A stretch of DNA of 57,840 nucleotides, from positions 1-57,840 of the forward strand of contig NW_021834247.1 of assembly GCF_006345805.1 (NCBI RefSeq). Reading direction: 5' to 3'. Positions 3,446 to 32,489 of the stretch are shown piece after piece. The notes under the pieces are model-generated. The model was given only the letters and a program-made list of their open reading frames with translations. It searched no databases and was not told the origin of the DNA. Each line of letters begins with the position of its first letter. The first letter of the stretch is position 1. The stretch is from Octopus sinensis. Taxonomy: Eukaryota. Both the position numbers and the translations under genes were made by a program.

Positions 3446-3941
3446 TTAAGAGAGGGGAGATAGGCGGGTAAGTAGATAACATATCAGGTGACCAGTAAGA
3501 GATTCTGGGTGCAATAATCAAGCACCACTGGGGTTTGTGGTAGCCCATGATTAGATGATGCGTCCAACTACTTACAACCTGCGGATATTCATTAACACAT
3601 TAATATGCTTCTTCCCCAGCCACTCATGCGCAGAGAGTTGGTGGGTTGGTGGGGGCGGGGAATGAGTAGGAGGATTCCTTGAGCAAGAACCTTTATTTCA
3701 CGTTGGTCCAGTTTACTCAGCGAAAATGAGTTGTGCCTGTATTTCAAAGGGTCAACCTTGTCACACTCTGTGTCATGCTGAATCTCCCTGAGAACTACAT
3801 TAGGGGTACACGCGTCTGTGGTGTACTCAGCCATTTGCATGTTAATTTCACAAATTAGCTGTTCCGTCTTCTTTAAATTGCTCTTTACTTCATTTTATAA
3901 GTTTTTAAAAACCATCTTACTTTCCTTTTCATTCAAAAGAC

Positions 3942-4024
3942 ATGGATGTAAATAAGATTATAAGCAAGATTCTGACTGGGAACTTTGAAGATGTGAAACG
4001 ATTTATCAGAAAAATCCTGAAACA
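3942..4024 (+). CDS. Probable coding exon 1 (MDVNKIISKILTGNFEDVKRFIRK...), with an apparent 1-nt deletion in an A run
   Basis: ATG at 3942 and strong donor ACA|GTAAGT. One extra A in CAGAAAAATCC gives RKNPET, joining in phase 0 to VNQINSRSKT, which resembles the helix preceding the first ANK repeat of MIB-type proteins. Confidence 0.55.
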
Positions 4025-7000
4025 GTAAGTTTACTTTATATTGCTTCTTCAATGTTGAATGTTTGTTTATTATTTTATACACAATATTAAATGTTCCTAA
4101 ATAACCAGATATATTTGTCCATAATATTTCATATCTTTCTTTACCTCTTTCCTCTAATCCTCATCATTGTCACTTTTTATAAATATTCAACCAGACAATG
4201 AGGTATGCCAGAATTGATGGAATGTCAGTGAGAGAGAAACCCATCCTCACACACTGCAATGGAATATTCTGGCAGGAAATATTCAGTCCAAGAGATGGGG
4301 GACAGATGGATCCTATAGATAAATGGTGACTTTGTCAAGAAATTCTCTTGCCATACACAGTTGAAGGTTTTACCGATGTCAAGGCTACACTATTTCTTTG
4401 CAGAAGTTGTCAAACATAACCAAAACACTGGGGAGTCACGTAGGAATCAGACCCCTGCTTGAACTGGCTTTATGGAACTGTACTGGTGCTCTTTGAATAG
4501 AAAAGATACCCAAAGGACAAAGATAATGGTTGTTTATGACTTTTTACTTCATAATTGAAATATTGGAAGTTAGAATGACTGGCTGGTAGTCAGCAGATAG
4601 GACACTATCAGCAAAAATTATAAAACAGGGCTTCTCTAATAGAGTAGTACTACCATTGGGTAGGGATTGTGGAAAATTTTATAAGGACCAGGGAGTCAAG
4701 GCGGCTGTGGTGGTACAAATATATGAAACTCAATGTGTAGTTGTGTTTGGATCAGAGAACCATCATGGTTAGGGAGTGGTGGGTGGAATGATTCTGTAAA
4801 ATCTATAGAGATACTCTTGGTAAGAGACCAGAAAATGAGGCTTTAATTTGGAAGGGAAGATAGCTGACAAATGGTGAAATGCAGAAAAAAACATCCTTTA
4901 TTTTCTTGATGACCATCATACATGTATTTCAATGGTGGGTGAATGTCTGCCAGTTAGTGAGGGTAGGTGTTTTCCTCAAGGTGGAGTCGATAGTGTTGTT
5001 TGTACAGCTGTAATACAGTTGTGTATGAACCACTCACACCTTTTTAAATATTGTATGGCTACAAACTAATGTAAGCCCTGATACTGCTGCCGCATTTAGG
5101 CTCAAAATTCTGATCACTACTTTCATAATATTTCTTATTTTCTCCATTGTTTCTTTTCATTTGTGTCTACCTTTCCATAGTTGCTCATATTTAGTTGTGA
5201 TTGGTGTCGTTCCAAAGATGTCACAGATGTCTAATTACAAGTAATTACTTTGTAATAGATTCAGTGACTAACATAAATAGATTATCAATCTTTTCCTTGA
5301 GCTTATGCATGAACTAAACAATCTTTATTTACCTGTTTACCTGTTACACCTTGATTTACCTGTGCTCTACACCTTTCTTGTAGATTTGCTTTCATTCTTT
5401 TCCAAGTAGATCCCACATTGCTGTTTCACCAGACATATGACATCTGAAGATCCATGCTTCATTTCAAACATCCTGTTCTTCTCTCTCACCATTTCTTAAA
5501 CCTCTTTCATCATTATAGCATGAAATGAAAGTGCTACTATGCCAGACATCAGTGATAACAAAGTGTAGAATTTCATGAGCTTTACCAGGGAATACTAAAC
5601 TAAAATCCAGTCTGATATATTCAGAATCTACACAATTATTTCTGAGGTTTTGACCCTTTATAGCTCTTCCCCTTTTCAGTTACTTTATACACCATCTTAT
5701 GGCCTAATCCCTACAGTTGCATGTTTATATGGTTTCTCTTATTTACCTGTGTGTCTCCTATCAGATACCACGTTTGAAATCTTGTCAGTTCTCTTCTCTT
5801 CAATTCAAATTGATATCATACATACCAGTAATAAACTGGGATATTTTCTCAACTGATTTTTTTCCTCTTCAGCCGGACAAAAGTGAGGTTGTTACTAAGA
5901 CAGACATCTTATGTTTCATAAGAAAGACTCTTCCATCTACCATGAAACGGTATATTTGTACTGATTTCCCTTGATATTGCTCTGTCCACTTCTATGAAAA
6001 TACAGAAAGTACAAGTCATGTAAAGAAAGACACCAATGACCATCTAAAGTGCATGCCATCGTACATGGGATAGAACACTAAAAGACAGAAAAGGGAGCAG
6101 TAAAAGAACCATAAAAAAAGGGTGCATAGGAACCAGTGTTTCTGAATTACAGAAAGTGTGGTGTTTTTGAAGGTTACAGTGTTCTGACTGCAAACAACCA
6201 ATGTAGATAGTTTATATTCCGTACCCTGACAATTCTGAGCATAAAATATTTGTTTCCGATACCATGGAAACTGGAATGGCTTTGTTTTTTTATTATAAAG
6301 CATGTCTGAGAGTGGTAAAGATATTAAATTCCAGAAGTGGTCAAAGTTGTTGTTGAAAGATGAGGGATAATCTTGTGGGATCAAGTGAGTTGCTAGAAAT
6401 GACAAAATTCTCTGTCGATGCATGGAGAAGCAATACATTTAAGAAATGATAAGTGATTGAGTGAGGCTAATTTTATGGTTGTACATCTATGGACAGCTTC
6501 CAGTAGATTGGCATTCTGGACAAAATGAGCATACCAGATTGGAGACACAACCTATACATGATGGCTGCCCCCTCGTTATCGAGTATGGCCATTGCACGAA
6601 ACTTAACTGTTATTGATGCTGTGATCGAATGTGACTTTTTAGCCCAGCTAAAGATCTACAATGTCTTGTACAAAATTGGCAACTAAAACCTTTACCGGTA
6701 AAAAGCCGGCTGTATTTGTAACTGGGCTTCATGTACCTTTGCATGTCGTTTAAGTCCTCCTGCCGAATTACACTCTCTTCCACATGCCCGACAGATATGA
6801 TTAGTATGGTGTGTTACACCACCACCAGTGGCCAGATTATCACTCATCTGTCTCGCTTTATGATTACAAAGATGACTCGTGAGTCATCCTATACATACAT
6901 ACATGCATACATATCAGTATATATATAACAAAGTATGGATATAGTAATCTAATTAGGTAACAATGTCTAAGTTAAATGTTTGTGAGAATTTGAAGCTGTA

Positions 7001-7075
7001 GCTTTATTGTACTTAGACCAGTGGTGGGACTTGAATGACTGGAACTATACATACATACATACATACATACATACA

Positions 7076-7110
<35 letters not shown>

Positions 7111-7682
7111 GGTGGCTGCCCCCTCGTTATCGAGTATGGCCATTGTTCGAAGCTTAATCAATGTTGTTATCGTGCAATGCCTGTGCAAGAAGATTTTATT
7201 TAAGTAAGGAAAGGCTGTGCACTGAGTCAATCCCACTCACTAAGCAACAGCAGCCATAATCCGAAAAGAAGAACAAGTCAACATCATCGGTAACCACTGA
7301 GCTGCAGGTTTTATGCCGGAGTTATCCCAGTTACCTGAGTTACCTTCGCCTAGAAGAATGCCCTAACAAAGGCTAGGAGTCCTTCACTCCCAATGATTTA
7401 ACCGCGCGATCGGGTATTCAGTCCGATTATTTCTATGTTCCCGTGCATGATACAGCCTTAAGACATTTATTGGATGGCCATTGACTCTCAAGAGTTCCTC
7501 CACCCTTACATACATACATAAATACATGTGTGTGTGTGTATGTATGTGTGTATATGTATATGAAGGTGAATGGCTCAATGGTTAGGGCAACAGGTTCACA
7601 ATCAGGAGATAGTGAGTTTGATTCCCAGCCTGGGCTGTGTGTTGTATTCTTCAGTAAGACTTTTTATTTCATGTTGCACACT

Positions 7683-7727
<45 letters not shown>

Positions 7728-9927
7728 CTTTCTTTCTTTGTCTTTCATATCCCTTTCTTTCACTCCAGCATCTTCTTTACTCTCTCTTCTCTTCTCTCCT
7801 TTCTCTCTCTCTCTATTCTTCCCTCCTATCTCTCTATCTCTCTCTCTCCTTTGATATGTTTTATATATCTTCTCTTTCTTCTCTTCAGGTCAACCAAATA
7901 AACTCACGCAGTAAAACTTTCTTAATGGCAGCTTGTGAACAGGGCAGCACAAGTCTCATAGCCTTCTTGATAGAATCTGGAGCCAATATGGACATGAGTG
8001 ACGAAAAAGGTCGCACAGCTTTACATTATGCTGTGAAAAGGTAAGACTTGAATTAACTAAAATCTTGAGATCTGCTTTTGTTTTGAAATTTTTTGCAATT
8101 CCAGACTATTTGAATATCCAAAGATACCATAATAGTGGCAGTGTGACACGATAACAGCATGATAGTAGTAACCAAATAACATCTTTTTCTCATTTTCTCC
8201 ATGAATCCCCTTCATTGGATCACAAAAATCTTTTTCGTTATTTGTTGTCAAAACAGATTATTTTTGTTTTGGAGATATTCTTTGAGAGCCAACAGTTCTT
8301 AAAATTGACCCAGTGTGATTCAGTGTCTTCTCTTCATATTGATTATGGAGAGATCGATCAATTTTTCTCCAAAGAAAATATTATTTGAGATCTAAAGCAA
8401 CAAGAAAGATTCTCAAGCTTGTTTTGGCAGTAAATAATCTGTAAATTTCTTACAGAAATTATTTCTCACCTCCATCTGCAACTCACTCAACACATTTTGA
8501 GATCTATTATATTTTGAATTGTGCTTCATAAGGTCATCTCTGGACAATAAAACATGTTTTGAAGTTCTTGTTAGTTTCTATAGCTTCTGCAGTCACAAAT
8601 TGTTCCAGAATTTTGCACAAACACACACACACCATCATCGTCATCGAATGTTCCTTTTCCATGCTGGCATGGGTAGGAGGGTTTGATAGGAACAGACAAG
8701 TCAGAAGACCACACCAAACACTACTGTCTGCTTAGGTTTGGTTTCTATGGCTGGACGACCTTCCTAACACCAACCACTTTGCAGAGTGTACTGGATGCCT
8801 TTTACATGCCATCCGAACCAGTGAGGTCACCAATTAATTGCGAGACAAAGACCTCTCGACTGGTTGAGGTGGTGGGGTAGGGGAGCTAATATTGCTAGAG
8901 AGAAAGGTGTCTTGCATTAGAAGCGGGACATGGCTCCTTCAGATGGAGAAGACAGAGGAGGGAAACACTAGGTTAAAATCTAGTGTTTGGCCCAAGCAAA
9001 GAAAAAAGGAAAAAATAGTGCAATAGGTGTAAAACAACATGTAGTAAACGAATACTCTTACTCTTTTACTCTTTTACTTGTTTCAGTCATTTGACTGCGG
9101 CCATGCTAGAGCACCGCCTTTAATCGAGCAACTCGACCCCGGGACTTATTCTTTGTAAGCCCAGTACTTATTCTATCGGTCCCTTTTGCTGAACCACTAA
9201 GTGACGGGGATATGAACACACCAGCATCGGTTGTCAGGCAATGCTAGGTGAACAAACACAAACACACACGCACACATACATATATACATATATATGACAA
9301 GCTTCTTTCAGTTTCCGTCTACCAAATCCACTCATAAGGCTTTGGTTGGCCCGAGGCTATAGTAGAAGACACTTGCCCAAGATGCCACGCAGTGGGACTG
9401 AACCCGGAACCATGTGGTTGGTAAGCAAGCTACTTACCACACAGCCACTCCTGCGCCAATCGAAAAAAGAATATGGCGAACAGGAGGTGGAGAGACGACT
9501 CGGAAAATTCAAATCTCACCGCTTCCCCATTCGTCGGCGAATTTTTTGTTCTTTATTTTCGTTTTTTACACATTATATTACACCCGGTACTCTACTTGTG
9601 TTAAATTTTTGTGACGGGGCGAATGGATGGGGTGCGGACTCGGATGATTCACACGATCCGGTAACCCCACTCGACAACCGGTCCCAAAAATGAAAACAAA
9701 AAGTGTAATAGGTGTAAAACAACACGTAGTAAACGATGTTAAAACGTTGAGTTTTCGGATCCTGTGAGATTGATCGTGTGAATTTTCCGAGTCGCCTCCA
9801 CCACCCCTCATTCGCCAACGTGTATTTTTTTTTACATATTCGTTTACTACATTTTATTTTATATCTATTGCACTATTTTTTTTGCTCGGGTCAAACACTG
9901 GAGTTTAACTTATACACACGCACGCAC

Positions 9928-9969
<42 letters not shown>

Positions 9970-10619
9970 ACATATATAATAAATTTGGGTGTGTTTATAT
10001 ATTCATTTATGTGTGTTATATGACCGCCATACTTCCTTGTTGGTCACTGTTTCTTTTGGCGGTAAAAATACGTCTCGTTGCCCTTAACAACAAACTTTCT
10101 CTTGCATAGTCTGTTGCTATGACAACATTACATTTGCAGACGTAGTTTTCCCGCCAATTACGACGTGCTGCTGTTGTTGTTTTTTTTTTTAGACTGATGA
10201 GAAATCTGCTATCAATTAGTTTGTCTATAATTTTCAGACATTCCATCTTTCGCAAAAGGATTACAATATATTTTTCAATGTATACCAAATATGTAGATAC
10301 TAACAACGGTACTTAATCCTTGTTTCGTATTGTACACTCGCTGGGATAAAAATATTTATACTTTATACCCTCACCTATTAATATGTGTATACACACACAC
10401 GTACACATTTGTTTACTGTGTATTAACGATTATACGTATTTCAGTGGCTCATATTTCTCTGTCTGTCTGTCTCTCTATATACATACGTATATATATACAC
10501 ATATACATACATACACATATATGCATATATAAATATATATATATATACACATATACACCTATATAATATTATTGACTTTGATATTTCAACTAGCGATATG
10601 AACCGTTGATATATATATG

Positions 10620-10681
<62 letters not shown>

Positions 10682-13600
10682 CATACTTACACAACTGGGA
10701 CCCCCGACAAATTTGTTTCCTTATAACTTTTAGACAGATGGATATCTTTTAATGGAATTTCTATGACAAAAATGCTTCAGATGATGAAGATTCCAATTAT
10801 ATTGGAATTTGTTGTGAAAACAAATTTTCAAACGTTGAGAAGTTGACTTAAATCCTTATTGAAACTTTCAGAAAAATGGATATTTTGTTTGTGTGAAAAT
10901 TTCTACAAATCCCTTTCAAATGGATTAGATTAGGATTATATCGGAATTTAACATGAAAAAACGTTAAATATTTGGTGGATACACACACATATATACTGAC
11001 ACACATCACGGTTATTTTTCCAAAGTTCATCTTTTCAGTTTCTGATGTGTGTCAGTGTATATCTCTGCGAATCCACCAAGTTTTTTTAACTTTTCTTCAT
11101 ATTAAATTCCGATATAAGTGGAATCTTCACCATCTGAAACGGTTTTATTGAAAATTTCATTAGAAAATATTTATTTTTTGGGAAAGAAAGCCGACTCGGG
11201 CAAACTTTCCCAAATTTCTCTCTGCACCCACTAAAATTTTTTTCTCACAATAAATTCCAATATAATTGGAATCTTCGCCTTCTGAAGCATATTTTTGAAA
11301 GAAATTTCATTAAAAAATATCCATTTTTCCTAGAAGTTACAGGGAAACAAATTCGTCGGGGGAGCACACTTGTGTAGTTATGTCTATACAGGCATGCACG
11401 CACACAGACATATATATATATATATATATATATACACGCGGCTGTAATATATATATAGGTTTTTATGCGTTTAATTGAACACGAGTGTATATTTAATGTA
11501 ACTGTTAAGTGAATGTCTGTGATGTTTTATGTTTTTTTCTTCCTTTCAGCCGTAAAATTGATGCAGTGGCCTCCTTAGTTTCCAGGGGAGCAAATGTTAA
11601 TAAGCAGAACTCAGACGGCAACACACCTCTACATTGGGCTGTGAGGAAGAACTATAAAGATGTAGTCAAAGTCCTGTTAAGTAGCAAAGGAAATAACATT
11701 TTACAGGTTAGCGAATACATTTATATTTGTGTATATAGATATGTATGTGTGTGTTATATGTATATGATGTATACATACAGTTTAGTGCCCCAAATTTCGT
11801 TTCCTAAAGAAACCCCACCTTTTCTTTAAATTTTTTTCCCCGACACAAATCCCGCTTTTCGGTTAAGGGAAATACGAATCTGCAAAAAAATTGGTAAAAA
11901 CTGGCAAAAATCGGCATTTTTAAATTACCCCCACCCCTATTTCCTTCATTCTTTACTTTTTTCACAATTTTTTTTTTCAGAATTTGCGGAAAAATACGGA
12001 AATGATGATTCGGACAAAAATTCAAAACATTCCGTAGTTGGGGTTAGGGTTAGTGTTGGGGGAAAAAAGTCAAAGTTGAAGAATTTTGGAGGGGTGGAAC
12101 CATTCCACTGCCGATTTTTTGGCAATTTTCCCGAACCTCCGTGTCCGAAATCGGGTTTTTTTGGCAAAAAAATTTTTAAATAAACAAATTGGTGGGGGGA
12201 CTCTTTCGAAAGTTGCTCATTTCCTTGCGTGAGAGTGTATATATATATGTGTGTGAGTGTTTATATGTATATATATTATATGTGTGTCTGTGGGTACAGG
12301 TAAGATATGAACCTCATTTATTTACTCTCCTCTCCAAATTCATTCCACCTGTTTATTAATCTGATTCTTTCTCTTTTTTGAAATTTTTCATTTTTGCGCT
12401 GCCCCCCCCCCCATCCACTTGACGCCATCTTTGATGTCTTTATTGTTTATCTTTTTTAGGTCACTCAGCGAAATAATAAAGGTTGGACACCTCTACATCT
12501 TGCCTCACTTTATGGACACACAGACACAGCTAAACTTCTCCTACAACAAGATGGCACTGATGTGAGGGTGGTGGACAACGATGGTTGCACACCTCTACAT
12601 CATGCCTCGTATAATGGACACACAGACACAGCTAAACTTCTCCTACAACAAGATGGCACTGATGTGAGGGTGGTGGACAACGATGGTTGGACACCTCTAC
12701 ATCTTGCCTGTCAGAATGGACACACAGACACAGCTAAACTTCTCCTACAACAAGATGGCACTGATGTGAGGGTGGTGGACAACTATGGTTGTACACCTCT
12801 CCATCATGCCTGTCGGAATGGACACACAGACACAGCTAAACTTCTACAACAAGATGGCACTGATGTGAGGGTGGTGGACAACGCTGGTTGGACACCTCTA
12901 CATCGTGCCTCGTATAATGGACACACAGACACAGCTAAACTCCTCCTACAACAAAATGGCACTGATGTGAGGGTGGTGGACAACGATGGTTGGACACCTC
13001 TACATCGTGCCTCGTATAATGGACACACAGACACAGCTAAACTCCTCCTACAACAAGATGGCACTGATGTGAGGGTGGTGGCCAACGATGGTTGGACACC
13101 TCTACATCTTGCCTCACTTCAAGGACACACAGACACAGCTAAACTCCTCCTACAACAAAATGGCACTGATGTGAGGGTGGTGACCAACGATGGTTGTACA
13201 CCTCTACATCTTGCCTCTTCTCAAGGACACACAGACACAGCTAAACTCCTCCTACAACAAGATGGCACTGATGTGAGGGTGGTGGACAACTATGGTTGTA
13301 CACCTCTACATCATGCCTCGTATAATGGACACACAGACACAGCTAAACTTCTCCTACAACAAGATGGCACTGATGTGAGGGTGGTGACCAAATATGGTTC
13401 GACACCTCTACATCATGCCTGTCAGAATGGACGCACAGACACAGCTAAACTTCTCCTACAACAAAATGGCATCGATGCCAATAAAGCGGACAATGATGGT
13501 GACACTCCTCTCCATCTGGCAGTTCAAGGGTAAGTCCCCAATGGATTTGGATTATCCAAATCTGTTTCTTTAATGTTTTCAATAACGTTTGTTTTCTTGT

Positions 13601-14632: not shown

Positions 14633-14673
<41 letters not shown>

Positions 14674-17600
14674 ATATGTAGGATCCAAGGATTGAGATAT
14701 AGGAAGGTGAGCTTCAAACAATCCATAGAAAATGTAAGAAACAACTTTCAGGAACAAAAGGGGTTTATTGGGGTGCAAGGTTGTTGGTTTTTCCCTTACC
14801 GCATCTTCTGTGTTTGAACATGTGCCTCCTATTGACAGTGTAAACTTGATTTAATCAAGACACCCTTGGTCTGAAGAGTAGCCTGTGGTATACACTTCGT
14901 TTGGATATTTACCAGTTCTGATGTTCCACCTGCTTTGAAACATATGTAGCCCAGATTTTATCTTAACTCATATATATATATACACACATGTATAATGTGT
15001 ATTTGTGTGTATGTAATTATTGATGTAATTAGGTTATAATGACCTAATTACATTTGTTTTCATTGGTTAATCTAATAATAATTGTTTTTCCTCTCCTCTT
15101 TGTATAACTTTCAGGCAACACTATGGTATGGTATCTTTGATGCTGGCCCAGGTTAGTTAACAAATACATATTATATCCTCTCTCTAGTATTCAATATTTA
15201 TATCATCAAAATACCAGTGAAATTCTGGGGGCAGATTTAATCAACTTCACTGCAGCAGCCTTTAATTAGCAGGTCTTGGGTCTGTGAAAAATAATTATGT
15301 TGCTGATAACAATGATGATAGTAGTAGTGGTGATGACAGTCCAACTGACCACCACTGCTGATAGTACTATCTTTAATGGTCAGACAAAAAAAATCATGAA
15401 TTCAACCCATATATATCAGATTATATATATATCATCATCAACCACTCTGCCATATGCCCACGGGCATATGGCATAGTGGTTAATAGTACGGGCTACTAAC
15501 CCCAAGATTCTGAGTTCAGTTCCAGGCAGTGACTTCAATGATAATAATAATAATAATAACAATAATAATAATAATAATAATAACAACATTGAAAAATACC
15601 TTTGGAATGAGAACATAGGTTCGAAATTTCCCCAAGACACCTGATGAAGGCTGGAGGGTATATCAGCCGAAACATTGTGTTAACAACAAACAGGATGAGG
15701 ACAAATATCCATCAAATGTAAATAATGTAAATAATGATGATGATCATCTTTTAATGTCTGTCTCTCATGTTGTGTGTGTGTGTGTGTTTTGTGTAAATTG
15801 TTGGTGTCTGCATTTTATCTTGTGTCCAATAATTTATTTGGCTTCTTGGCTGCTTTTTTCCCTCTGCACGTATGTATAAATGTATGTGTATATATGTATA
15901 TATATATATATGTATACCCAGAAAGAGAGTTACTCTTGTCAGACACATTGCACACTCAGATTATGCAGCAGAGATAAGTTAAAGGTCCTTGTCCCCAGCA
16001 ACAAAGCTAAATAAGGGCATGCTACACTCAGTCCCTATTGCTTAGTTAATCCATTATCATCAGTACATGATGCAATCAACTTCCCTTCTCCTCTCTCCCT
16101 GCCTAACTCAACGGATTAACTACCCTTACTGTATTTGTCTACCTAACTTATTTACCTGTATTTGTATTAACATGGCTTTGCATGAATGCCGGGATGCAAC
16201 ACCCTCCACTGTTGGTGGTGACAATACCTGATTAACTCCTCTTTACAGGTATCCATACTAACACCTCTGTGCTAATGCCAGCACAACACCCACGTCCAGT
16301 GGTGTTAGCAAGCGTTACATGAATGATGCAGGATTAAATGCAAGGACAACTGCTAATGACATGCTGGCAGGCAAATGCTAATAACAACCTTTTCAGACGC
16401 TGATAGCTGCAGCCAATGTAGACACAGCACTGTCGATGTAAGCACATGCAACAAGTATCTCGTCTTATGCGCACCTCCCCCACTGCCCCTACAAGGTCTG
16501 TCAAATGAACTGAAGGGCTACTTCTATGACACTCTTCTGCTGGCCACTTCAAAGATAAATGACCGTGACCTTCGTGGCTGGTGATTTCAATGGACGTGTT
16601 GGGCAGCACCCAGGTATCTTCCATGGGGTACATGGTGGGACACAGAATTGTGGGAACAAAAACATAGCCACCATGTACACCATGGAAGCCCCCTGCGTGT
16701 TGTCCAACATGCCCATTGAAGTCGCCAGCCACAAAGAGAAGGTCCCTGTCATTCATTGACGAGGTAGTCTGCAAGAGGGTGTCATAAAATCAGTCTTTCT
16801 GTTCATCAGGTAGCCCTGGCTGAGGGTCATAAGCCGAGATAAAGGTTGCTAATCCATGTTGCAGCACTAATCTAATCTTAAGTATTCCATCACAGACTCT
16901 GACTATCTCGATTACCTTATCAGCCCATTTCTCTGCCCCCGACTCCATCAGTGTTCCCTCTCTACTCAGAAACTTATACTTATGTTCTTTGCCTGTGAAG
17001 AACTTAGCAGAACTTCCTCTCCACCTTCTTGGATGCAGCACAAATCTACATGTCTCTGTTCAAGCATGTTAACAATATCACCAGACCTACCTTTCAGTGT
17101 GCCGACGTTGAGAGTACTAACTCCTGAGGGTGTTGAAGGTATGGGTCCACGAGACCCTGGGATGGGGGACAGCAGCATCATGTACCTAAAAGAAAGCTTG
17201 CATTTGGCAGAACCCATAAACATACATAGTCTTCAACCTGCAAACACTACACCATCATTTTATCACTACATCATCACTACTTACATAGGAGATAAACCCT
17301 ATATATATATAATATATGTATTTTTTAATATATATTATTATTATTAATATAAGTAAATCAATATGGATTTTTCACAAAGATATACCCATATGAAACACCA
17401 TTTTAATTTTAATTCAAATTTTTTTATATAAAATATCATTCGATACATTATTCAATATTCATATTTTTATATCTCGAAGAGGAGAAGGGTTGTCCATAAG
17501 TGCTTATCAACATAGGACTTCATTATAGAATCAACCCTTTTTGCGAAACGATTGTAGATGCTTAAAACTTAATTCAAAACTTTTAAAACTTTCAAATTTA

Positions 17601-18426
17601 TTTTATACATCATATTTATATTTTTTAATATTTATTTTTTATTTATATACATTTTTAATACATAAGTCTTTCATATGGGTATATCTTTGTGAAAATTCGA
17701 TATTGATTTCCTTATATTAATAATAAAATATATTATTAAAAAATATATGTATATATGCTCATATTAAATATATAAATACTTTAATAGTATTAATATTATT
17801 TTATACAATGGAGCACTTAATATAAATTCAGTATATAATATTATTAATATAATAATATATATATGTATTGTGTATCACCAATATTATGACACGACTGTTT
17901 ACATACATAACCTTGTAGTAACAATAAAACATATTACGGATCGGGTAACACAACAACCATACACAAACCAACAAACAATAAAAAAACACCTTATGACTTC
18001 CTGCAATTAACACCTACTCTCTCTGGTCTCTCACTCAGACTGCTACTATTCATAGTCGTTCAGTCAAGTCTGTTCTTGCATGGGTTCTTGTGACTCTCGC
18101 CACAACATGTAATCGAGTCCAGGACTTATTCTTTGTAAGCCTAGTACTTATTCTGCTGATCCTTTTTGCCAAATCGCTAGCTTACAGGGATGTAAACACA
18201 CCAGCATTGATTGTTAAGCAATGTTGGGAGGACAAGCACAGACACACAAACACACACACACACACACACATATACGATGGGCTTCTTTCAGTTTTTGTCC
18301 ACCAAATCCACTCACAAGCTTTGGTCAGCCCGAGAAATAGTACAAGACACTTGCTCAAGGTGCCATGCAGTGAACTAAACCCAATCATGTGGTTTGTAAG
18401 CAAGCTATTTACCACAGCCACTCCTG

Positions 18427-18457
<31 letters not shown>

Positions 18458-20035
18458 AAATATATCTATATATATATATATGTGTTTGTGTGTATCTCAC
18501 TTCCATAACATTCATGTATATGTGTGTGTATGTACAGGAATGTTAAGGATGTGGACACTAACCAACTCACCTGTTTTATGAACCCCTTATTAATATAGCA
18601 ACATCATAATTCTTCTTTACTAGTTTTGATCTGCTAATTATATGTTCACTCTTGTTCTGCTCCCCTAAAATTTACTATAGTGAGAGATAAATATAGATTA
18701 GGATGAAACAATCTGTTTAAGACCTCTTAATAGATTAATCATGTCCCTTACACATATCCCATGTACATTTTCAATTTCTATTTTTACTTCCACAAAGGAT
18801 TCAGTGAAACTGGATATCGAGAATCATAAGAAAATGACACCATTGATGGAAGCCGTGTTCAGGGCCCACCTCGGAATAATCCATAAACTTATTATAAATG
18901 GTGCAAACATAAATGCTGTCAACAATGATGGCAATAATTGTTTGCACCTCTCAATAATAAAAAAAGAGATGTTCCATTCTGAGGTGGAACCCATTCCCAT
19001 TTTAGACGAGGTAAGTTTTAAAAATTGTTTGTGAATATGTGTGTGTGTGGTTGGCATTAGGAAGGGCATGCAACCGCAGAGACTATGCCAAAATTGGCAA
19101 TTGGTGCCTGAGCAGCTCTGCAGCTGCCCAGCTTCTGCCAAACTATCCAACCCATGCCAGCATAGAAAACGAATGTAAAATGATGATGAGGAGGATGTGT
19201 GTATGTGTGAATGAGAGAGAGAGAAATAGAGAAACAGGCAGACATTGTTTGCTATTTTCTTTCACTCCCATCCACTTCTCTTCCTTTAGTATTAAATAAT
19301 TCAGTTTCTCCTGATAGCACTAGTTGTATTATGTAACTAACAATATTCCATCTTCTTTCACCTTCAAAAGCATGGCCACTCCACTGTAAAGAAGGTAACC
19401 CGTCTTAAATATGTGTCATGTAAACACTGCCATAACTGTATGAAGGAGAGGTGACCAACGACAGAGATAAGTCTTTAAATTTAAGAAAGAGAAATTCACA
19501 AACTGTTTTAAATATCGAATTTCAAGTTAAACGAGTTGAACTGTGTTAATTGCTAGAAAGCATATTTCATTATTCTTTTTCAAAGAAAGGAAAATTAAAA
19601 TAAATTCGTTTATGGACAATTAAATTTAAAGAAAATATATTCATGGACTTTGAAGAAAGTTTCTTTTATCAGTATGATAATGAATATATAACTGAGTTTA
19701 TTCAAAGTTGATAATTAGGATTCCAAATATTGCCAGGGCTTGGACTTTGTGTGTATATTGACTACAGTAATACCCCTTGCAATGATTGTAAAGAAGGGAG
19801 ATGTGATGAGAATGAATTTACATTAAGATGTGCGCACAAAAGTGTAATGTCACGAGATTGTATGTATGACAATGTAACTAGACAGATAGTCATAGAGGCC
19901 CTTTGTTACCAACAAAGATAGAAGCTCTCTGAACTTTGCCCTGCTTAATCTTATTCTAGCAGCTATGCTCTTGGCGCATCCACCTCCACTACTGACTTGA
20001 TTACCTAGATAACAGTAGCTATCAACTACTTCTAG

Positions 20036-20099
<64 letters not shown>

Positions 20100-23000
20100 G
20101 TGTGTGTGTGTGTGTGTGTGTTTGTTTGAAAGACCTCAGCATCTATCCACTGCTAGATCTGATGGTGTCTATTGTCTGTTGTTGCAGAATTTAAGCAACT
20201 CTTTGATTCCCAAATATGTAACGGTCACTACAGATGTGTAACTGTATTTCAGACAGTTGATGGTCACCTATGTATTGTTGTAATGTCTTCTTTGGTGAGA
20301 AGAAGCTACTCTAGCAGTCAACGACCCATTATTATAGGAATTGTCTATCAGACTAACAGTTTCAACAATTTCTTGACTATAATGTGTTGGTGTGTTGCCT
20401 CAACCACCACACCAATCCTTACTTCCTTTACTTCACTTCATCAGCCAAAAATGTTTCTTTATAAATTTTGGAAACATTATTGATATGCTTGGATATGTCT
20501 GTCTGGTGTTGGTTTTGTTGCTGTGTCTGAAGAAATTATTATGTTCTTGGTGTTCTCTGTTCATTGTTTGTTGTTATGGAAATGAGTTGCACTTTGTGAC
20601 CAGTGAAACGTTTCCCAATCAATATTTGGATTATCGAAATTACCAGTTTGAAAATATGGGTGACTGCTTTCATAGATGCAGATCTGAAGATGTCAAAAAT
20701 CTGAGTTTTGATGGCAGTTTTGCAGATGGTAAACTAATTCAAGTAGGAGTATATATGTTGCTAAAAAAATACTTCTTGTTGCTACCAGTTAAAATCTCCA
20801 CAAGGAATTACAGAAAATCTTGAGTGTCCATAAACCATCACACGACCCCCATGGTAATTAGAATGGCCTTTGTGTAACAAATTGTAGCTTGCCATTGTTT
20901 GTTGTTATGTTGTTGTGCTATATTTATGTATACAATACTCTTCCATAAGTATTTCTTTTGTTATGGCCAGTTGGCTTTATCAAGCCAGTTGTAAAGATAG
21001 GTTCTTGTTGGTTTGTTGTGTTCTGTTATTTGTGATACTTGTTCCATTATATTTCCTACATTTGACATGATTTGTTTATCTACAATATATATTTGTGTAA
21101 TATTCTACTCATCGTTTTATATTTCATCATTTGCAGTGCTGCAGAGAGCTCCAACTGGACATGGATAGGAGGCTCTCTGGAATAGTAGTTTTGAGTTACC
21201 TTGCCAGCCAAGGAGCCAGCTTATACCATCATAATAATAAGAAAATGACCCCATTGGACTACATAGAAAATCAACATTTGAAAGAAAAATTAAAAACATT
21301 TTTACAATCACTGTAAGTACTCACTGGCAATGCCAAGATAAACCAGGACATTTTCTCTTTTGTATATAATCATGTTTATATGTTTATTTAGTTTGAATTC
21401 TCCCAATGTATTATTCCGTCATTAGTGTCTTGATTCAAGACAACAATAATGATTTCCAATTCTGGCACAAGGCCAGCAAGGTCAGGGAGGGGATAAGTCA
21501 ATTACAACAGCCGCAGTTTTCAACTGGTACTTATTTTATCAACAGCAAGGTAGAGTCAACCGCAGCTGAATTTGAACTCAGCATGTAAAGGCAGACGAAA
21601 TGCCAGAAAGCATTTTTCTCCGTGTGCTAATGATTCTGCCAGCTTGCAGCCTTAAGACCACACAACAATAATAAGAACAATAAACAGAAAATACAGTTGT
21701 TAGTGGATCAAACGAAAAACACTATTTTGATGACATTCACATGATTGCTGGTGTTGACTGATATACCTCACCATCCACCCCTGACTATTTTAGAGTTCGG
21801 TGACCTCCATGAAAATGTAGTACTAAATAATAAAGTGAATGAACACATTTTGAAATTGCTATTTAGAAGTAAATAGGATTTATCTGTCTACCAACAATTT
21901 TTTTCTCTCTCTCTTCTCTGACTCAATCAGTTGTCATGTACGCTTTCGTGTAAAAATAACCTAAAACACACACTAACAATGTGTATGTCATCATCATCAT
22001 CATTGTCATCATTTAACGTCTGTTGTCCATGCTGGCATGGATTGGTCTGTTTGACTGGGATGGCATGTTGGAAGGCTGCACCTTAGTCAGCCTTTGAAGT
22101 TTTCAGCCCAACCTTGTATGTGTATGTTAATGTGACACTTGTATACTCACAAACCTGCTTGTATGTAATTGTTTACAGAAGAATTTACGATGTACTCTTG
22201 CTGGTTACTGTTGTGCCCCTTAATATTCTGTACTCTAAACATGTCCACAACGAAATATTTTATTATAAATGAATGTTAATGATGGAATGTGTTAATATTT
22301 TGTTCCACAGGTGTCGGTGGTGTCAAGAGAAAAAGGCTACTGTCACACTCCATCCATGTCAACATACCGTTACTTGTCAGAATTGCTGTTCTCAAATGAC
22401 ATTTAAGCAATGCCCCATATGTCGACAACACATACTCCGGAAAAGTGGATTTGGTAAGAACATTCTTTCTTGATCTGTCTGTTGTCTCATCAACTTTCTG
22501 GTATGGAATAATGCATTTCATATTGTAGTGGAGACATGCAACTCCTTGTTTGTAAATATATATTATGAACACTTGTTATAATGTTTGCCATCCTTTTAGA
22601 CATTTTATACTCACACTCGTTAGTTTTTAGATGTGATTAATGCTAAAAGAGACATTGTTTTCTGACTCTTTCACCTTTTGGCTTTACTTTTGAGTTGATT
22701 CGTTTTAATTCGAACATGAAGCCTGGTCATTGCTCCAAGGTAGTATCAGAAAGTTCACGGACTAGTTCTGTAGCATGCCAACAGATGGCTGCACACCGTT
22801 GCGCGCACAGTGAGAGCTAGCAATGACTTTCATGAGGCGGTGTGCTGGGTGACACCACTGCGTTTACTTCAAAAGTTGTGAAATTTGTGCTTTTGTGGTC
22901 ATTTGTAGGCTGTAGTCTGCAATTTTCTAATGGGCAGGAACAAATAACCAATGTGAAATTTTGCGTTAAACTTGTCCAGCAAAGACATAAGAAAGAAACA

Positions 23001-26000
23001 ACAAAACTAAAAGAAAAAGATTGTTATGAAGTGATAACTGAATGAGAGAATTTCAGAATTGTTAGATTAGTATATAGGACGTCTTAAGAGAAAGATGAGA
23101 TTTAGAAAGGTTTGCCTATTTTGTTGTGGTTCTAAATATTGAACTATTATATAGTAACAGCTTAGAAAGTGTTGACCGAAAGCATAGTGGTCACCAATTG
23201 ACTATTGATGATATGAATGCCTTACAATAATGGAATATAGATTATTAAAAGAGACAAAGAAATTTTACTATGAAGTATAAAACTTTGAAATGCTTATTTC
23301 AGTGTGTCCAAAGTCTGAAGAAGAAGCAGCAAAGGCAGTTGCAGAGTCTGTTGGTGAGTATAAAATAACTGTAATTGATTTCTATAAATTTTACCTTCAC
23401 CTGAGTTATATTATTTGTGTGAGTGTCTGAGAACAGGTTCCATTCCTAATTTCCAATTCTTATTTCAGTGTTTCCAAAGTCTGAAGAGAAAGCAGCCCAG
23501 GCGGTTGTAGAATCTGTTGGTGAGTATAAAATAACTGTAATTGATTTCTATAAATTTTACCTTCACCTGATGTATATTATTTGTGTGAGTGTCTGAGAAC
23601 AGGTTCCATTCCTAATTTCCAATTCTTATTTCAGTGTGTCCAAAGTCTGAAGAGAAAGCAGTCCAGGCGGGTGTAGAGTCTGTTGGTGAGTATAAAATAA
23701 CTGTAATTGATTTCTATAAATTTTACTTTCACCTGAGATATATTGTTTTTGTGAATGACTGTAATTGATTTCTATAAATTTTACTTTCACCTGAGATATA
23801 TTGTTTTTGTGAATGACTGTAATTGATTTCTATAAATTTTACTTTCACCTGAGATATATTGTTTTTGTGAATGACTGTAATTGATTTCTATAAATTTTAC
23901 TTTCACCTGAGATATATTGTTTTTGTGAATGACTGAGAACAGGTTGTAGGAAAGAGAAGACACAATGAAGAGAAAAACAGTGTTATCAAGTGATAATTGA
24001 ATGAGATATTTGCAGAAATGTTAGATTATGTAGGCTGTCTTAATAGAGAGAGAAAAGGGGAGGAATTTAGGAAGGTTAGTCTATTTTGTGGTGTCCCTGA
24101 ATATTGAGCTTTAACATAGTATCACGGTAGAAAGTATTAAAATATTAGCCAAAACCATAGTGGTCACCAGTTGACCATTGATAATAGGAATGCCTGACAA
24201 TAATAAAATATAGACTATTAAGAAAAATAATTTAAAAAAAATTTAACTATACATTGTAAAACTTTTAAATATTTATTTCAGAGAGTTTAAATTTGGAGGA
24301 AAACCGCTTCCATAGCACATCGAAGAAAGTGGCAGTTAAGCAACAGCAAGTTGGTGAGTATAAAATAAGTCCGTAAGTGATTTCAAATTAGTTTTACTTC
24401 ACTTGAGCATATTTTCTTTTTCAGAAGGACTGAGAACAGGTTCCATTCTTAATTTTCAATTAATAATTCTTTTGAAGAAATTGCTGAAATTTAAGAGAAT
24501 GCCCACCAAGGTTAGAACAGACAAAAGTTAATGATGTCTTTTGGAATAGAGAACTAAAATATGTTATTTGGTTGGGGGTGAACAAGTGCTTTAACGACAA
24601 GGCTTTCGTTTTGCATTTATACTGTGTTTACTAATAAGTTGTTGTTTTAGCAGGAGTCTCTCATAATCTGGCAGACTTACAATGAAATGCATTCCCAGTG
24701 TCAACATCCTGTCTTTTTGTCACTGATAGGAAATCTATCATTACATCCATTAAACACATTGTCTTTATCGAAGTAGAAAACACTGGCTTGCTACTGAGAT
24801 AACCATTGCTTCTTTGTTGTTTTTCTCTCTCTCTCGCATTCTCTTTTTGATAGATACTAGATGCAAGATACAATAAATGACATTGTCCTCATCATTTATC
24901 ATCAGATAAATGTTCCTGTGGAATGGATGGTGGAGGGTGGGGGTGGGTCACTGTCCAAGTCAGTTCTTATTAGCAGTTACTGTCCACCTTCATTGGTTGA
25001 GGATCATGTCCCACTAAAACATTCCAGCTTTCCTATGATGGTCTACCCTTCCTAACACCATCCACTTTATAAAGGATCCTGGGTACATTTTATTGTGGCA
25101 CAAATACAAGAAAGATTGTTATGTATTCAACAAAATTAAACATTCCTCTCGAACTTATGCAAAGAAATATCAGACATGTTGAAAGAAGAAAGGAAAGTAA
25201 ATGAATTAGAGAGCAACTCGTTAAGAAACCTTATGAGGTTACTCGGAAGCTGTTTGCAGATGCTAAGAGTGGCAGGATAAAATGTAATAAATGAAATCCA
25301 ACTTAGGTATGGTTAGTGGTCAGTAGGGATAGCTAGAAAAGCATTTTTAGCTATCCCTACTGACCACAATATATATATATTTAACTTTTTTGTTTTATTA
25401 TTTACTAATTTGAAATTTCACCAGTTACAATCTGCTTTATTTTTGCAGCTATTAATCTTGTCCATTTCTGCCAAGGTGATGAGCAAGTACCAGTTGTGTA
25501 CTGGGATTGATGTAATCAATTAGTCCCCTCCTCTGTAATTGCTGGCCTTGTACCAAAATTTGAAACCAATATTACCCATCCCCGTTCAACTGTCTTCAAT
25601 TCGCACACTGCTACATGAAACCACAACATGCCATTATGGGTTTATTTCTGCTAGTTATAGGCCTGAATGTCCATGTTAGCTAACTGCAGGTTTCTCATTG
25701 TCAGATGATTAACCTTGGCCATTACATTGTATCGTTTAAAAAGAAACAATGTTTTAGTAGTTGAATTAAGCTTTTATTATTATTATTATTATTAACATTC
25801 ATTCTCTGAGTTCAGTACCTACTTGGGTTGACTTTGCATTTCATTCCTCACAGGTCAGTAAGACAATTACAAGTTACATAACATGTCAAACTAATTGACT
25901 TCATACTCTCTCTCTACAGATCTATCCACTTGTATTAATCGAAGAATTCATAATTAACATTCATTTTTCAAAACCCTCGTTACCACACTATATTGCTGTC

Positions 26001-29000
26001 CAACTGAATCATCTCTTCCAATCATATCAAGTAAAACCTTCTGCTTTTCTGTATATTTTGGTGAGACTTTAGTTGGCTTTTTAGTGAGACTGATTGTTTG
26101 GTGTTTTAGAACATGACCTTTAAACCAAGTATTGAGAAGACGACCCATCAAGCCAAGTAAAATTGCAGTCGTGGCAGATACTGGTGGCATGTAAAAGCAC
26201 CCATTGCACTCTGGGAATGGTTGGCATTAAGAAGGGCATCCAGCCGTAGAAACCATGCCAAATCAGACTGGAGTCTGGTGCAGCCTTCCAACTTGCCAGC
26301 CTCAGTCAAACTGTCCAACCCATGCCAGCATGGACAGTGGACGTAAAGTGATGATGATGAACTGGAGGGGCACATACAGGAGATCTACACTGATCCTAAG
26401 TGAGATAATCCATTCCCACTCATGGACAGTTTAAAATGCCCCCAAAAAACCATGAATCAAATCTCAACTTGGTGGTTTCTAGCAGAAACAATTATATAGC
26501 TGAGTGAAGCAAACAAAGAGTGCCCCAGGAGGTGATGGTGTATCATAGAAAGTGTACAGGTATTGTACACAATTATGTTATAAGCTGTACTTAAATAGTT
26601 GTGGCATAAAGGTGAAATGGTTGATGACTAGTACAAGGCAGAAAAAAATTACTTACCAAAGAAAGCTGAAACAGAACTGATTGAGCAGTTCAGAACCTTT
26701 TCAATCTTGAATGTAGATGGCAAGATTTATATGGGTCCAGTTGCCAAGAGATCAGCTACACATCTCCAAAATAATGACTATGAGACCGAGAGTGTCCAGA
26801 ACCACTGGATGGGTAGAACATGATTTTTCAATCTGCAATGCAATACAAGACACAAAGAAGAATAAAAGGGATTTGAACGTTTTATGACCTGATCTGGTTG
26901 ATGCTTATGGTTCTGTACCACACAAATTAGTGATGGAACCAATGAACTTCTTTTATATATGAGAGAAGATTAGAGATCTGGCTAGAAACTGCTGTAATAA
27001 TTTCAAAATGTGGTTCCTGACAGAAAATTTCACAACAGACATCGTTTTGAAACTGTAATTGCTGTAGGTTGCACAATATCAGTCATTTGGTTTGTACTTG
27101 TTATGGAGATGTTACTTAGATCAGCAGATTGATCAGAAGAAATGGCTCGAGTGAAATCACCCAAGAAGGAATTTAAAGGATGATATAACAATACTAACAA
27201 GAGACCAAAAGGGTATGCAAATAGTTCTGGATGGACTGGATTAACTAATTCTTTGGTCAAGAATGGGGTTTAAACCAAATAATTAATGCAGTCATTTGTC
27301 AAAAGGTTAGCTGAAGCAAGTGAAGTTCAAAACAGCATACAAAACCATGCCATGGGTTAAAGAGAAACCTCTAAAATCTTTTGGACGATGGTATGCTACC
27401 TCATTGTCCAGTAAGAGTAGAAGCATAGAGGTCATGGCACAAACTGAAGATGGGTTAAAGGCAATAGCTAAGCCAACATTTCCTAGCAAATAAAAGATTT
27501 GATGCTTCCAGTTTGATCTGTATCCCTTCCTTGCTTATAAAATCCTTGAGTATCAGTTTTTATGCAACATTTCAGATTTTTTTACTGCTATAATGTATGG
27601 ATGAACAATTATATATAGTTAATAAGATTTTGTGAAAGCATAAAGTGTTTGGATACCTGATATGTTTTTGCTCCCCCTCTGCCCACCTGGAAAGAAATGT
27701 GCTTCATTAAGAAGTCTTCTAACATCTCAAATACATGTGGCACATATATAAGAAGAAAAAAAGAAAACTAAAAGAAAAACAGTGTTATCAAGTGATAATT
27801 AAATGAGATAATTGTAACATTGTTAGATTATTTAAGATGTCTTAATAGAGAAAGGAAATTGAGGAAGGTCAGTCTATTTTGTTGTAGACCTAAGTATTGA
27901 GCTATTTACCTGGTCCCACTGGAGAAAGCATAAAAATGTTGACCAAAAACGTAGTGGTCACCCGATGACCAGCGATGTCCCACTATAGTGGGACAAGTAT
28001 GTCCCACTATAATCAAATATAGATTATCAATAAAGAATTTTTACTCTCAAGTATAACAGTTGCAAATATTTATTTCAGAAACTCCAAAGTTAGAGGAGAA
28101 GTGTCTCCAAGATGTTGCAAAACTGTTAGGAGCCAACTGGCAGCAAGTTGGTGAGTATAAAATAACAGTACTTAATTGATTTCAATAAGTGTCAGCTTTT
28201 GTTTGTCAGCATGACTAAGAGAAGATCCCATTCCTACTTTCCAATTGAAAGGCTAGCTGTAAAGTGATTCTATTAAAGGTATTGGTGTTATGTGTAGTTT
28301 CGTTCTAGATGGGTGATGGACATTGTTATTGTTTTACGTGTTTATTTACTTCACTTGTTACACGAACTGTCAACATTCGGCGTAGTGATACATATATACT
28401 TTAGACACAGTTCGTACTGTTTACTAACAAAATAGTGCCAAAAGTGGGGATGTATTCTACACACGTATACCTACGTATACACATAGATATGAATGTGTAA
28501 CAGTTGGTATTACTGAAACATCATAAAATAGCCACCGAGATTAGCAGGGCCAGTAAAATGGCTAAATTAGAGGACACAATGGATTTAATATTGTCTTTTG
28601 AGAGAGCAAATTAAAATATGTCATTTAAGGGTAAACTGGTGAGTTAATGATAATTTTTTTTGTTTGTTTTACATTTTTACTAAGTTTACGTTTTGTTGTT
28701 TTTTCTTTGCAAAATGCCTGTTTTAATCAGAAATACGATGGAAAGTGTTTCAGGTGGGACATATCTGTCTTTCAGTTGGTAGTACAGGACTACATCATTA
28801 AGTGCATCCTTTTTTACATGCTCCTGTGTATAGTGAGTGGCATGTTGCAGTCACTCCACTGTCCAGTGTCCATTTAGTTGTGAACCACTCTTCACTGACA
28901 TGTAATGGTTGATTGTACGTAGGTGGATGGTGTTTATGTTGGTGATTCCTGTCTTCTTTCCTGCAAGTTAAAACTCTCCTCTTTGCCTGGTTTAACTTAA

Positions 29001-32314: not shown

Positions 32315-32458
32315 CATTTAACCACACGGTTCCGGGTTCAGTACCACTGCGTGGCACCTTGGGCAACTGTCTTCTACTATAGCCTGGGGCAGACCAAAGC
32401 CTTGTGAGTGGATTTGGTAGACGGAGACTAAAAGAAGCCTGTCATATATATGCATATG

Positions 32459-32489
<31 letters not shown>

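Follow-up and report, generated by a model that had tools for sequence, protein, structure and literature searches.

Ankyrin repeats (ANK), RING fingers and death domains (DDs) are each well known, as is every pairwise combination of the three. Mind bomb E3 ubiquitin ligases carry an ankyrin domain with atypical terminal repeats and, directly after it, a zf-C3HC4_3 RING. The cellular inhibitors of apoptosis cIAP1/2 (BIR-CARD-RING) place a death-fold domain and a zf-C3HC4_3 RING in one chain, and oyster inhibitor of apoptosis proteins (IAPs) with the order BIR-DD-RING are an earlier molluscan combination of death fold and RING (PMC8917759). Ankyrins, ANKDD1A/B, DAPK1 and NF-kB p100/p105 join ankyrin repeats to a C-terminal DD. 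Here, we describe a gene of Octopus sinensis that encodes all three modules in the order ANK-RING-DD. The gene lies within a stretch of 57,840 nucleotides (nt), hereafter the window, which is the whole unplaced scaffold VCDQ01005398.1 of assembly GCA_006345805.1. Its DNA is AT-rich and animal in character, with many microsatellites and transposon remnants.

The octopus gene departs from each of these systems in its own way. Compared with Mind bomb, it lacks the MIB/HERC2-ZZ-MIB/HERC2 (MZM) module and the SH3 repeats, and it encodes one RING where Mind bomb has two or three. Its ankyrin array is much longer, internally repeated and variable, a DD has been added, and the gene is multi-copy whereas Mind bomb is single-copy. 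The cIAPs and oyster IAPs have a known or proposed role in cell-death and NF-kB complexes, and the oyster BIR-DD-RING forms share with the octopus gene a lineage-specific expansion in a mollusc. In contrast to both, the octopus protein is without a BIR, has ankyrins as its putative recognition module and places the RING before the DD rather than after a DD or CARD; in isoforms that include the DD, its RING is not C-terminal. Unlike the known ANK-plus-DD proteins, it has no ZU5-UPA module, kinase or Rel homology domain, and its RING stands between the ankyrins and the DD. That DD shares the six-helix fold of the RIPK1 DD, with 29-30% identity in structural alignment, but the octopus protein has neither the kinase nor the RHIM of RIPK1. 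Its DD is attached to a putative E3 instead, and helix 3 and the loop between helices 3 and 4 (H3-H4 loop) are hypervariable among paralogues.

Further afield, the plant XB3/XBAT ANK-RING E3s and TRIM5-type E3s couple a recognition module to a RING in immune or cell-death signalling and offer a functional analogy. Pfam gave a weak match to RING_XB3-XBAT31 (E 0.034), and demonstrated homology stops at the generic domains. XB3 and TRIM5 have no DD, whereas the octopus protein has no B-box, coiled coil or SPRY domain. NLR/STAND proteins are comparable solely in the logic of a repeat sensor coupled to a death-fold output.

Structure and products of the ANK-RING-DD gene

We built the gene model by aligning Octopus homologues to the window with tblastn and by reading splice sites. 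The gene runs on the + strand and comprises 14 exons and 829 codons (Table 1), with introns that are all GT-AG and exon phases that are all compatible. Splicing exon 4 directly to exon 6 left the frame, which the 37-nt exon 5 restores. In stop-to-stop translations of the + strand, the ankyrin pieces, the RING exon and the last DD exon lie at the sites proposed by a sequence-only reading; each piece is confirmed by Pfam, and the feature end that this reading had given, 31953, is exact. Across the 829-amino-acid (aa) spliced protein, which has about 14 ankyrin repeats, Pfam identified 14 Ank stretches (E 4e-132). The zf-C3HC4_3 match, at residues 614-657, scored 39.7 bits (cut-off 27), and the Death (PF00531) match, at residues 745-821, scored 40.0 bits (cut-off 22.6) and covered profile positions 2-79 of 86. 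With all three domains on one strand and joinable by canonical splicing, and with the RING and the DD scoring above curated cut-offs, the ANK-RING-DD order that had been proposed is real, and we confirm a real protein-coding gene of O. sinensis.

The existing RefSeq model, P0186 ('secG-like', 669 aa, coding sequence 7925-31953, +), is the sole annotated gene in the first 42 kb of the window, the part for which annotation was returned. It is identical to our model at residues 26-308 and 474-829, and it follows the same path from the RING through the cassettes and linker to the DD, sharing all junctions from the RING exon to the stop. Within exon 4, P0186 splices out five ankyrin repeats and inserts 30 out-of-frame residues, using a donor that is the second GT of GGTAAGT. 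Because the frame of exon 4 is uninterrupted and paralogues P0184 and P0185 include the exon in full, we regard this splicing as probably an artefact of evidence aligned to a tandem repeat.

The RING occupies a single exon and has its eight zinc ligands complete (C-x2-C-x11-C-x-H-x3-C-x2-C-x8-C-x2-C). Seven Cys ligands are nearly invariant among paralogues (at least 90%), and the His is mostly kept, with Asp in its place in P0015. By eye, paralogues also retain a C-P-x-C-R motif and a hydrophobic or aromatic residue (W/F/L/Y) before the second Cys.

An AlphaFold model of the DD alone reached a predicted local distance difference test score of ~90 over the domain. Foldseek superposed this model on the DD of ankyrin-G (template-modelling score 0.78, root-mean-square deviation 1.6 Å), followed by those of RAIDD, FADD and RIPK1 (range 1.6-2.1 Å), and there was no non-DD fold among its top 38 matches. 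A multi-domain model, used in the same kind of fold search, retrieved ankyrin proteins only. Compared by sequence with solved structures, the DD matched that of RIPK1 first (E 8e-6), then those of Fas, PIDD, ankyrins and TRADD. The C-terminal module is a genuine death domain and, by sequence, most similar to that of RIPK1. Hydropathy analysis gave neither a signal peptide nor a transmembrane segment (top 19-residue value 1.34), which makes the earlier suggestion of a receptor, in the membrane sense, unlikely and marks the predicted product as soluble.

Between the RING and the DD, the gene is assembled from small exons of one kind. Downstream of the RING exon come three cassettes of 51 nt each (VCPKSEEKA.QAV.ESV), a linker exon of 72 nt and another exon, also of 72 nt, in which the DD starts. 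All five of these exons (9a-11) are phase 1-1, and the RING exon ends, as the final exon starts, in phase 1. They have common intron borders (TTATTTCAG/ ... GTTG/GTGAGTATAAAATAA, slashes marking the borders) and ~100-150 nt of homologous intron flank on each side, although the exon sequences themselves have diverged; the flanks of exon 11, too, are homologous to those of exons 9 and 10. Judged from these alignments, the five small exons are serial duplicates of one exon-plus-flank module. The locus is thereby a clean natural example of exon shuffling via symmetric phase-1 exons. Directly after cassette 9c, a 58-bp unit is repeated 4.1 times (23696-23935, 99% matches); it is a duplicated piece of that cassette's own downstream intron flank, indicating that tandem duplication in the cassette module is recent.

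Because the phases are symmetric, any subset of exons 9a-11 can be skipped in frame. Annotated isoforms of paralogues contain 0-5 cassettes, and in one of them the RING exon is spliced straight to the final DD exon. Disorder is predicted for the cassettes and linker. Reading through the donor of the RING exon would yield an ANK-RING-only product ending in ...KSGFGKNILS-stop, and the RING-only paralogue models P0017, P0018 and P0021 end alike (GKNTL, GKNTV and GKKTI). This conserved tail suggests that the RING was formerly C-terminal, as it is in Mind bomb and the IAPs, and that an E3-only product may still be made. The DD could not be translated without upstream exons because the in-frame products of exons 9-11 contain no Met; the in-frame Mets of exon 12 all lie inside the DD.

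For comparison, we used two O. vulgaris loci 1.4 Mb apart on OX597842.1: L001 (~29.71 Mb), the closest to the window, and a second locus, L002. The sequence-only reading had begun the feature at 3942, which is indeed the ATG of the family's usual first coding exon (exon 1a), but this exon is frame-broken in the present contig. The first coding exon of paralogues follows the pattern MDV.KIIS.I...ENP.., and O. sinensis P0184 and P0185 begin alike. Exon 1a measures 83 nt here against 84 nt, phase 0, in the L002 paralogue (MDVNKIISNILDGDFEDVERLIKENPDQ) and, being 1 nt short, is out of frame with the exon 2 acceptor at 7889. Joining the two directly runs into a stop codon, and the sole acceptor that keeps the frame, at 7912, is non-standard. 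The missing base falls within an A-rich run, and its loss could be a true frameshift or a (long-read) assembly error. The alternative first exon, 1b, is intact and in frame with exon 2, and it serves as the first exon in an O. vulgaris model. It is 100% identical to its L002 copy, compared with 84% identity in its flanks.

Ancestry and distribution of the family

The segment from exon 6 to the RING aligned over 177 aa with the O. sinensis mib1-like protein P0123 (32% identity, E 2e-28, BLASTP), which has Mind bomb SH3 repeats (REP, PF18346). The crystal structure of the MIB1 ankyrin domain, 8v0e, was matched by sequence (E 1.3e-10) and was also the top Foldseek match. Such agreement identifies the predicted terminal ankyrin repeats and RING as homologous to the ANK-RING1 part of Mind bomb. 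Neither the 829-aa model nor P0184, a full-length paralogue, gave a Pfam match to the MZM module or to the SH3 repeats, and the single RING has no second or third C-terminal counterpart. Because MZM, REP and the further RINGs are absent, we rejected orthology with Mind bomb and read the gene as a derivative of the C-terminal half of Mind bomb. Membership of the IAPs was likewise rejected, as Pfam found no BIR, and so was membership of the NLR/STAND proteins, as it found no NACHT or NB-ARC nucleoside triphosphatase domain. The window gene has the features by which we define an Octopus ANK-RING-DD family, namely Mind-bomb-like terminal ankyrins, one RING, phase-1 linker exons and a RIPK1-like DD, arranged in this order.

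The 25 relatives recovered by a single-sequence search all came from Octopus. When 1.84 billion cluster representatives were searched exhaustively with HMMER, 262 matches were obtained, from which RING+DD members were picked by local domain mapping, and a profile search of 5.8 billion proteins added further relatives. Among the fetched proteins, at least 71 combine the terminal ankyrin/pre-RING region with a RING and a DD, and 44 are ANK-RING only. All 30 family proteins whose source was looked up belong to O. sinensis, O. vulgaris or O. bimaculoides. Members are scattered over many chromosomes and scaffolds, with hot spots on a 34.6-Mb and a 12.0-Mb O. vulgaris sequence, and many copies lie on small unplaced scaffolds. 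Neither the HMMER nor the profile search returned a RING+DD relative outside Octopus, the representation of other cephalopods in them being unverified; the nearest matches beyond the genus were Mind bomb or Mind bomb-like proteins (from a beetle and from a bryozoan), together with multi-DD proteins of amphioxus and ankyrin proteins of bacteria. Provisionally, then, the family appears to be specific to Octopus. Its size, its sources and its spread over the genome bear out the earlier expectation of a lineage-expanded family, and a conserved single-copy housekeeping orthologue, which would have spoken against the sequence-only reading, is not what we found.

Over long stretches, each of the two O. 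vulgaris loci shares 92-97% identity with the window, and the shared stretches form a mosaic that points to recent duplication and to exchange between copies. Exon 6 stands out against its surroundings: compared with L002 (66154-66601) it is 76% identical, with a synonymous divergence (dS) of ~0.7, whereas its intron flanks are 93% identical. This divergence of the exon above its flanks is indicative of a mosaic history of exon exchange between paralogues.

Full-text searches of the literature found no description of, or name for, an ANK-RING-DD architecture in octopus or elsewhere. The earlier statement that no characterised protein has this order holds to that extent, but the architecture itself is already predicted in RefSeq and UniProt. 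There, the RefSeq names (secG-like, MIB2-like, PSMD10-like and ankyrin-3-like) are misleading, having been borrowed from unrelated ankyrin proteins. As far as we have searched, what is new to the literature is the three-part order, the descent from Mind bomb, the linker built of exon modules and the way in which the sequences vary. Marine invertebrates commonly shuffle domains around DDs, but an expanded and variable recognition-E3-DD family is unreported in cephalopods, a group whose immune system is little understood in molecular terms. Highly motile animals, cephalopods among them, were reported to be without the large lineage-specific death-fold and TRADD-N expansions of sessile marine invertebrates (PMC8195603). 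The ANK-RING-DD family would be a counter-example, with dozens of loci combining a variable recognition array, an E3 ligase and a DD.

Patterns of variation and proposed function

Within an ankyrin repeat, codons 2, 3, 4, 6, 11, 13, 14 and 15 specify the beta-turn and first-helix residues of the binding face, and most of these positions are also randomised in designed ankyrin binders. Exon 4 is an ankyrin tandem with a period of 102, 9.7 copies and 92% matches (Tandem Repeats Finder). Its ten near-identical units depart from one another almost solely at unit codons 2, 4, 6, 11, 13, 14 and 15. Across its eight internal repeats, variable nucleotide sites account for 13 of the 24 in these binding-face codons, compared with 4 of the 78 elsewhere (Fisher p = 4e-7). 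The same positions vary in the repeats of three paralogues, and the number of repeats changes as well, from 10 in the window to ~14 in L001. The array does vary in the manner of a binding module, as had been suggested, and diversifying selection is the likeliest cause of the variation on the ankyrin face. The locus thus provides a natural example of an ankyrin array varying just at the positions that engineers randomise in designed binders. The L001 counterpart of exon 4 (1400-3800) is frameshifted after its eighth repeat, which reflects either a pseudogene or an assembly error; it is because of this frameshift that O. vulgaris P0010 has an unrelated N-terminus.

Variation is also concentrated within the DD. 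The DD exon differs from that of L001 by nine nonsynonymous and no synonymous substitutions, all of them within 49 of its 206 nt (P = 4.5e-5). This patch runs from helix 3 through the H3-H4 loop into the first turn of helix 4; its first two elements provide surfaces of type I and type III DD contacts. Introns of the window and L001 diverge by 1.8%, and the excess of exon over intron divergence reaches significance for L001 (p = 0.014) and falls short of it for L002 (p = 0.11). For exons 5-12, the ratio of nonsynonymous to synonymous divergence (dN/dS) is 1.27 against L001, on 18 substitutions, and 0.52 against L002.

We propose that the gene encodes a recognition-plus-E3 protein that docks into DD assemblies, a reading to which we give an even chance. 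Gene structure suggests that an ancestral ANK-RING gene was a derivative of Mind bomb that already lacked the substrate-binding half formed by MZM and REP, and that a DD was gained by exon shuffling downstream of the formerly C-terminal RING. It also suggests that alternative splicing would give rise to an E3-only form and to E3-DD forms with linkers of varying length. As the analogy with ankyrin-domain proteins suggests, the array would use its concave face to bind a target that differs between paralogues; by analogy with the RINGs of Mind bomb and IAPs, the RING would recruit an E2 and ubiquitinate the target, itself or its neighbours. The DD, if it behaves like others of its kind, would dock into or nucleate death-domain assemblies via homotypic contacts. 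Such a protein would link recognition to NF-kB-type or cell-death signalling, following a logic like that of TRIM5 or cIAP with the ankyrin array as the recognition part. Mammalian MIB2 binds RIPK1 via its MZM, ubiquitylates lysines at RIPK1 DD interfaces and restrains cell death (PMC5912950), which sets a precedent for MIB-type E3s acting on DD complexes. In the octopus family, where MZM is gone, the RIPK1-like DD could take over the task of recruiting. The coupling of ligand binding to ubiquitination and DD oligomerisation, as the sequence-only reading had put it, is pure inference.

Candidate partners of the DD would be octopus RIPK1-like, FADD, MyD88 and IRAK-type proteins, or a receptor with leucine-rich repeats (LRRs), an adhesion-type G-protein-coupled receptor (GPCR) module and a DD. 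One protein of the last kind, P0067 of Octopus bimaculoides, lies outside the window. It is an adhesion-type GPCR with LRR repeats, GPS, 7tm_2 and a C-terminal DD, a receptor-like architecture, and its DD is 43% identical to that of the ANK-RING-DD family. P0067 is a possible DD partner of these proteins. A bolder conjecture, which we rate as rather unlikely, is that the family could constitute a germline-encoded, diversified system of intracellular recognition peculiar to octopuses. It would be a natural counterpart of designed ankyrin-binder libraries, in which the framework is fixed and the binding face changes from repeat to repeat and from paralogue to paralogue, and it would be wired via RING and DD to a cephalopod-specific innate-immune or cell-death pathway. 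The DD surfaces particular to each paralogue would perhaps pair with further octopus DD proteins, the LRR-adhesion-GPCR-DD receptor among them.

Several points weigh against a recognition-E3-adaptor role. E3 ligase activity is assumed from the intact zinc ligands, and an involvement in immunity is argued from analogy and from the pattern of variation. The dN/dS values, obtained on few substitutions, are compatible with a mix of constraint and diversification and equally with relaxed constraint, and the DD patch could be a small gene-conversion tract instead of a product of selection. The usual start exon is frame-broken here, the closest O. vulgaris counterpart is frameshifted in exon 4, and some family copies may be decaying. 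The family is probably involved in immune or cell-death signalling.

In an alternative account, the window copy, and perhaps many others, is a recent duplicate that is decaying neutrally through drift and gene conversion and encodes no functional protein. The missing nucleotide of exon 1a, the exon 4 frameshift of the nearest O. vulgaris locus and the many copies on small unplaced scaffolds all speak for decay, as does a dN/dS of ~1.3 against L001 with dN near intron divergence (0.0196 against 0.018). Yet 829 codons have stayed open over 14 exons with all splice sites intact, including one exon of 1070 nt, in a genome of ~36% GC, and the alternative start exon is perfectly conserved whereas its flanks are not. 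The differences are also strongly non-random, falling in binding-face codons and one DD patch, and RING ligands and DD core residues are kept between paralogues that are just 40-50% identical. As the exon 1a indel lies in an A-rich run, it may be an assembly error. We consider neutral decay unlikely. A false join in the annotation, uniting an ANK-RING gene with a separate downstream DD gene, is more remote still and hardly credible. The RING-DD join is known here from genomic sequence and annotated models, and the conserved read-through stop (GKNILS-stop) makes an ANK-RING-only product plausible, but the RING exon ends in phase 1, a phase kept at both ends of the next five exons and at the start of the last, and a stand-alone DD protein would have no upstream Met available. 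Moreover, the RING exon is connected to the DD exons in annotations made independently for three species, which include many isoforms that differ just in cassette number; the possibility raised with the sequence-only reading, that transcripts might fail to make this join, is not borne out by the annotated models.

Other accounts accept the protein and assign it a different task. It may be a regulator rather than a sensor, with the DD bringing a Mind-bomb-like E3 to endogenous DD complexes, the ankyrins binding host proteins and variation reflecting specialisation of paralogues. Such an E3, recruited to DD complexes, fits the data as well as a ligand-coupled sensor does. The DD is RIPK1-like, the position of the variable DD patch, on helix 3 and the H3-H4 loop, agrees with partner matching among paralogues, and MIB2 provides a parallel by ubiquitylating RIPK1 at DD-interface lysines and restraining cell death (PMC5912950), as do the cIAPs. 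This account overlaps with the recognition-E3-adaptor reading and differs from it solely in what the ankyrins bind; hypervariability confined to the binding face of a homogenised framework, together with copy-number change, is more typical of fast-changing targets. We regard the regulator as a tentative possibility. A non-immune role in development or neurons, inherited from Mind bomb, might consist of endocytic regulation of membrane ligands or synaptic proteins, and the family would then count among several gene families that have expanded in the octopus lineage. The Mind-bomb-derived ANK-RING module and the related DD on an adhesion-type GPCR with LRRs are in keeping with such a role, and octopuses are known for neural gene-family expansions. 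However, the domains with which Mind bomb binds Notch ligands (MZM and REP) are absent, and the added domain is a DD of the RIPK1/Fas/TRADD kind, leaving a developmental or neuronal role very unlikely.

Feature coordinates and repeats in the window

Table 1 Exons of the ANK-RING-DD gene in the window
Feature	Position	Strand	Remarks
Exon 1a, usual first coding exon of the family (MDVNKIISKILTGNFEDVKRFI...)	3942..4024	+	83 nt; L002 copy 84 nt
Exon 1b, alternative first coding exon (MFHKKDSSIYHET)	5911..5949	+	Found by tblastn of O. vulgaris P0022; GT donor; ends in phase 0
Exon 2, first ankyrin repeats; RefSeq start at internal ATG 7925	7889..8040	+	
Exon 3, ankyrin repeat	11550..11706	+	
Exon 4, ~10.5 ankyrin repeats, ten of them near-identical 102-nt units	12460..13529	+	One open frame, 1070 nt
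Exon 5, 37-nt micro-exon (QHYGMVSLMLAQ)	15115..15151	+	Found by motif search; paralogues read ...LHLAVQKQHYGVVSLMLAQDS...
Exon 6, final regular ankyrin repeat, then the beginning of the atypical Mind-bomb-like terminal repeat	18798..19010	+	Aligns to 8v0e and P0123
Exon 7, pre-RING region (CCRELQLD...TPLDYIENQHLKEKLKTFLQS), end of the Mind-bomb-type ankyrin domain	21137..21312	+	
Exon 8, C3HC4 RING finger (zf-C3HC4_3)	22311..22453	+	Ends in phase 1
Cassette exon 9a (VCPKSEEEAAKAVAESV)	23303..23353	+	51 nt, phase 1-1; in a 166-nt tandem, 2.8 copies
Cassette exon 9b (VFPKSEEKAAQAVVESV)	23469..23519	+	51 nt, phase 1-1
Cassette exon 9c (VCPKSEEKAVQAGVESV)	23635..23685	+	51 nt, phase 1-1
Exon 10, linker (ESLNLEENRFHSTSKKVAVKQQQV)	24282..24353	+	72 nt, phase 1-1; predicted disordered
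Exon 11, DD start (ETPKLEEKCLQDVAKLLGANWQQV), helix 1 and part of helix 2	28079..28150	+	72 nt, phase 1-1
Exon 12, rest of DD (helices 2-6) and stop codon	31748..31953	+	206 nt; has the hypervariable patch

Rfam returned nothing at gathering score in the window. Intron 11 contains a stop-broken mariner/Mos1 transposase remnant (29869-30529, +) with matches to HTH_48 (E 4e-15) and Transposase_1 (E 1e-19). Open frames resembling fragments of the endonuclease or reverse transcriptase of long interspersed elements (LINEs) were recognised by eye at 16334-17223 (-), 38875-39246 (+) and 57158-57556 (-); apart from the mariner remnant, Pfam gave no matches for the LINE-like open reading frames of introns and flanks. 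A 135-bp unit forms a tandem of 6.9 copies (95% matches) at 52578-53510. The same element, which resembles a short interspersed element, is dispersed near 2076-2386, 9067-9454, 18112-18443, 32428-32703 and 53378-53783, and it also occurs in both O. vulgaris loci. Arrays of AT/TA and TG/AC lie at 36402-37755, 42982-43326, 51337-51844, 54903-55116 and 56271-56939. A microsatellite-like array of 7.3 kb (43795-51071) has a period of 4 (ATGT), ~1828 copies with 78% matches and a very strong GC skew.

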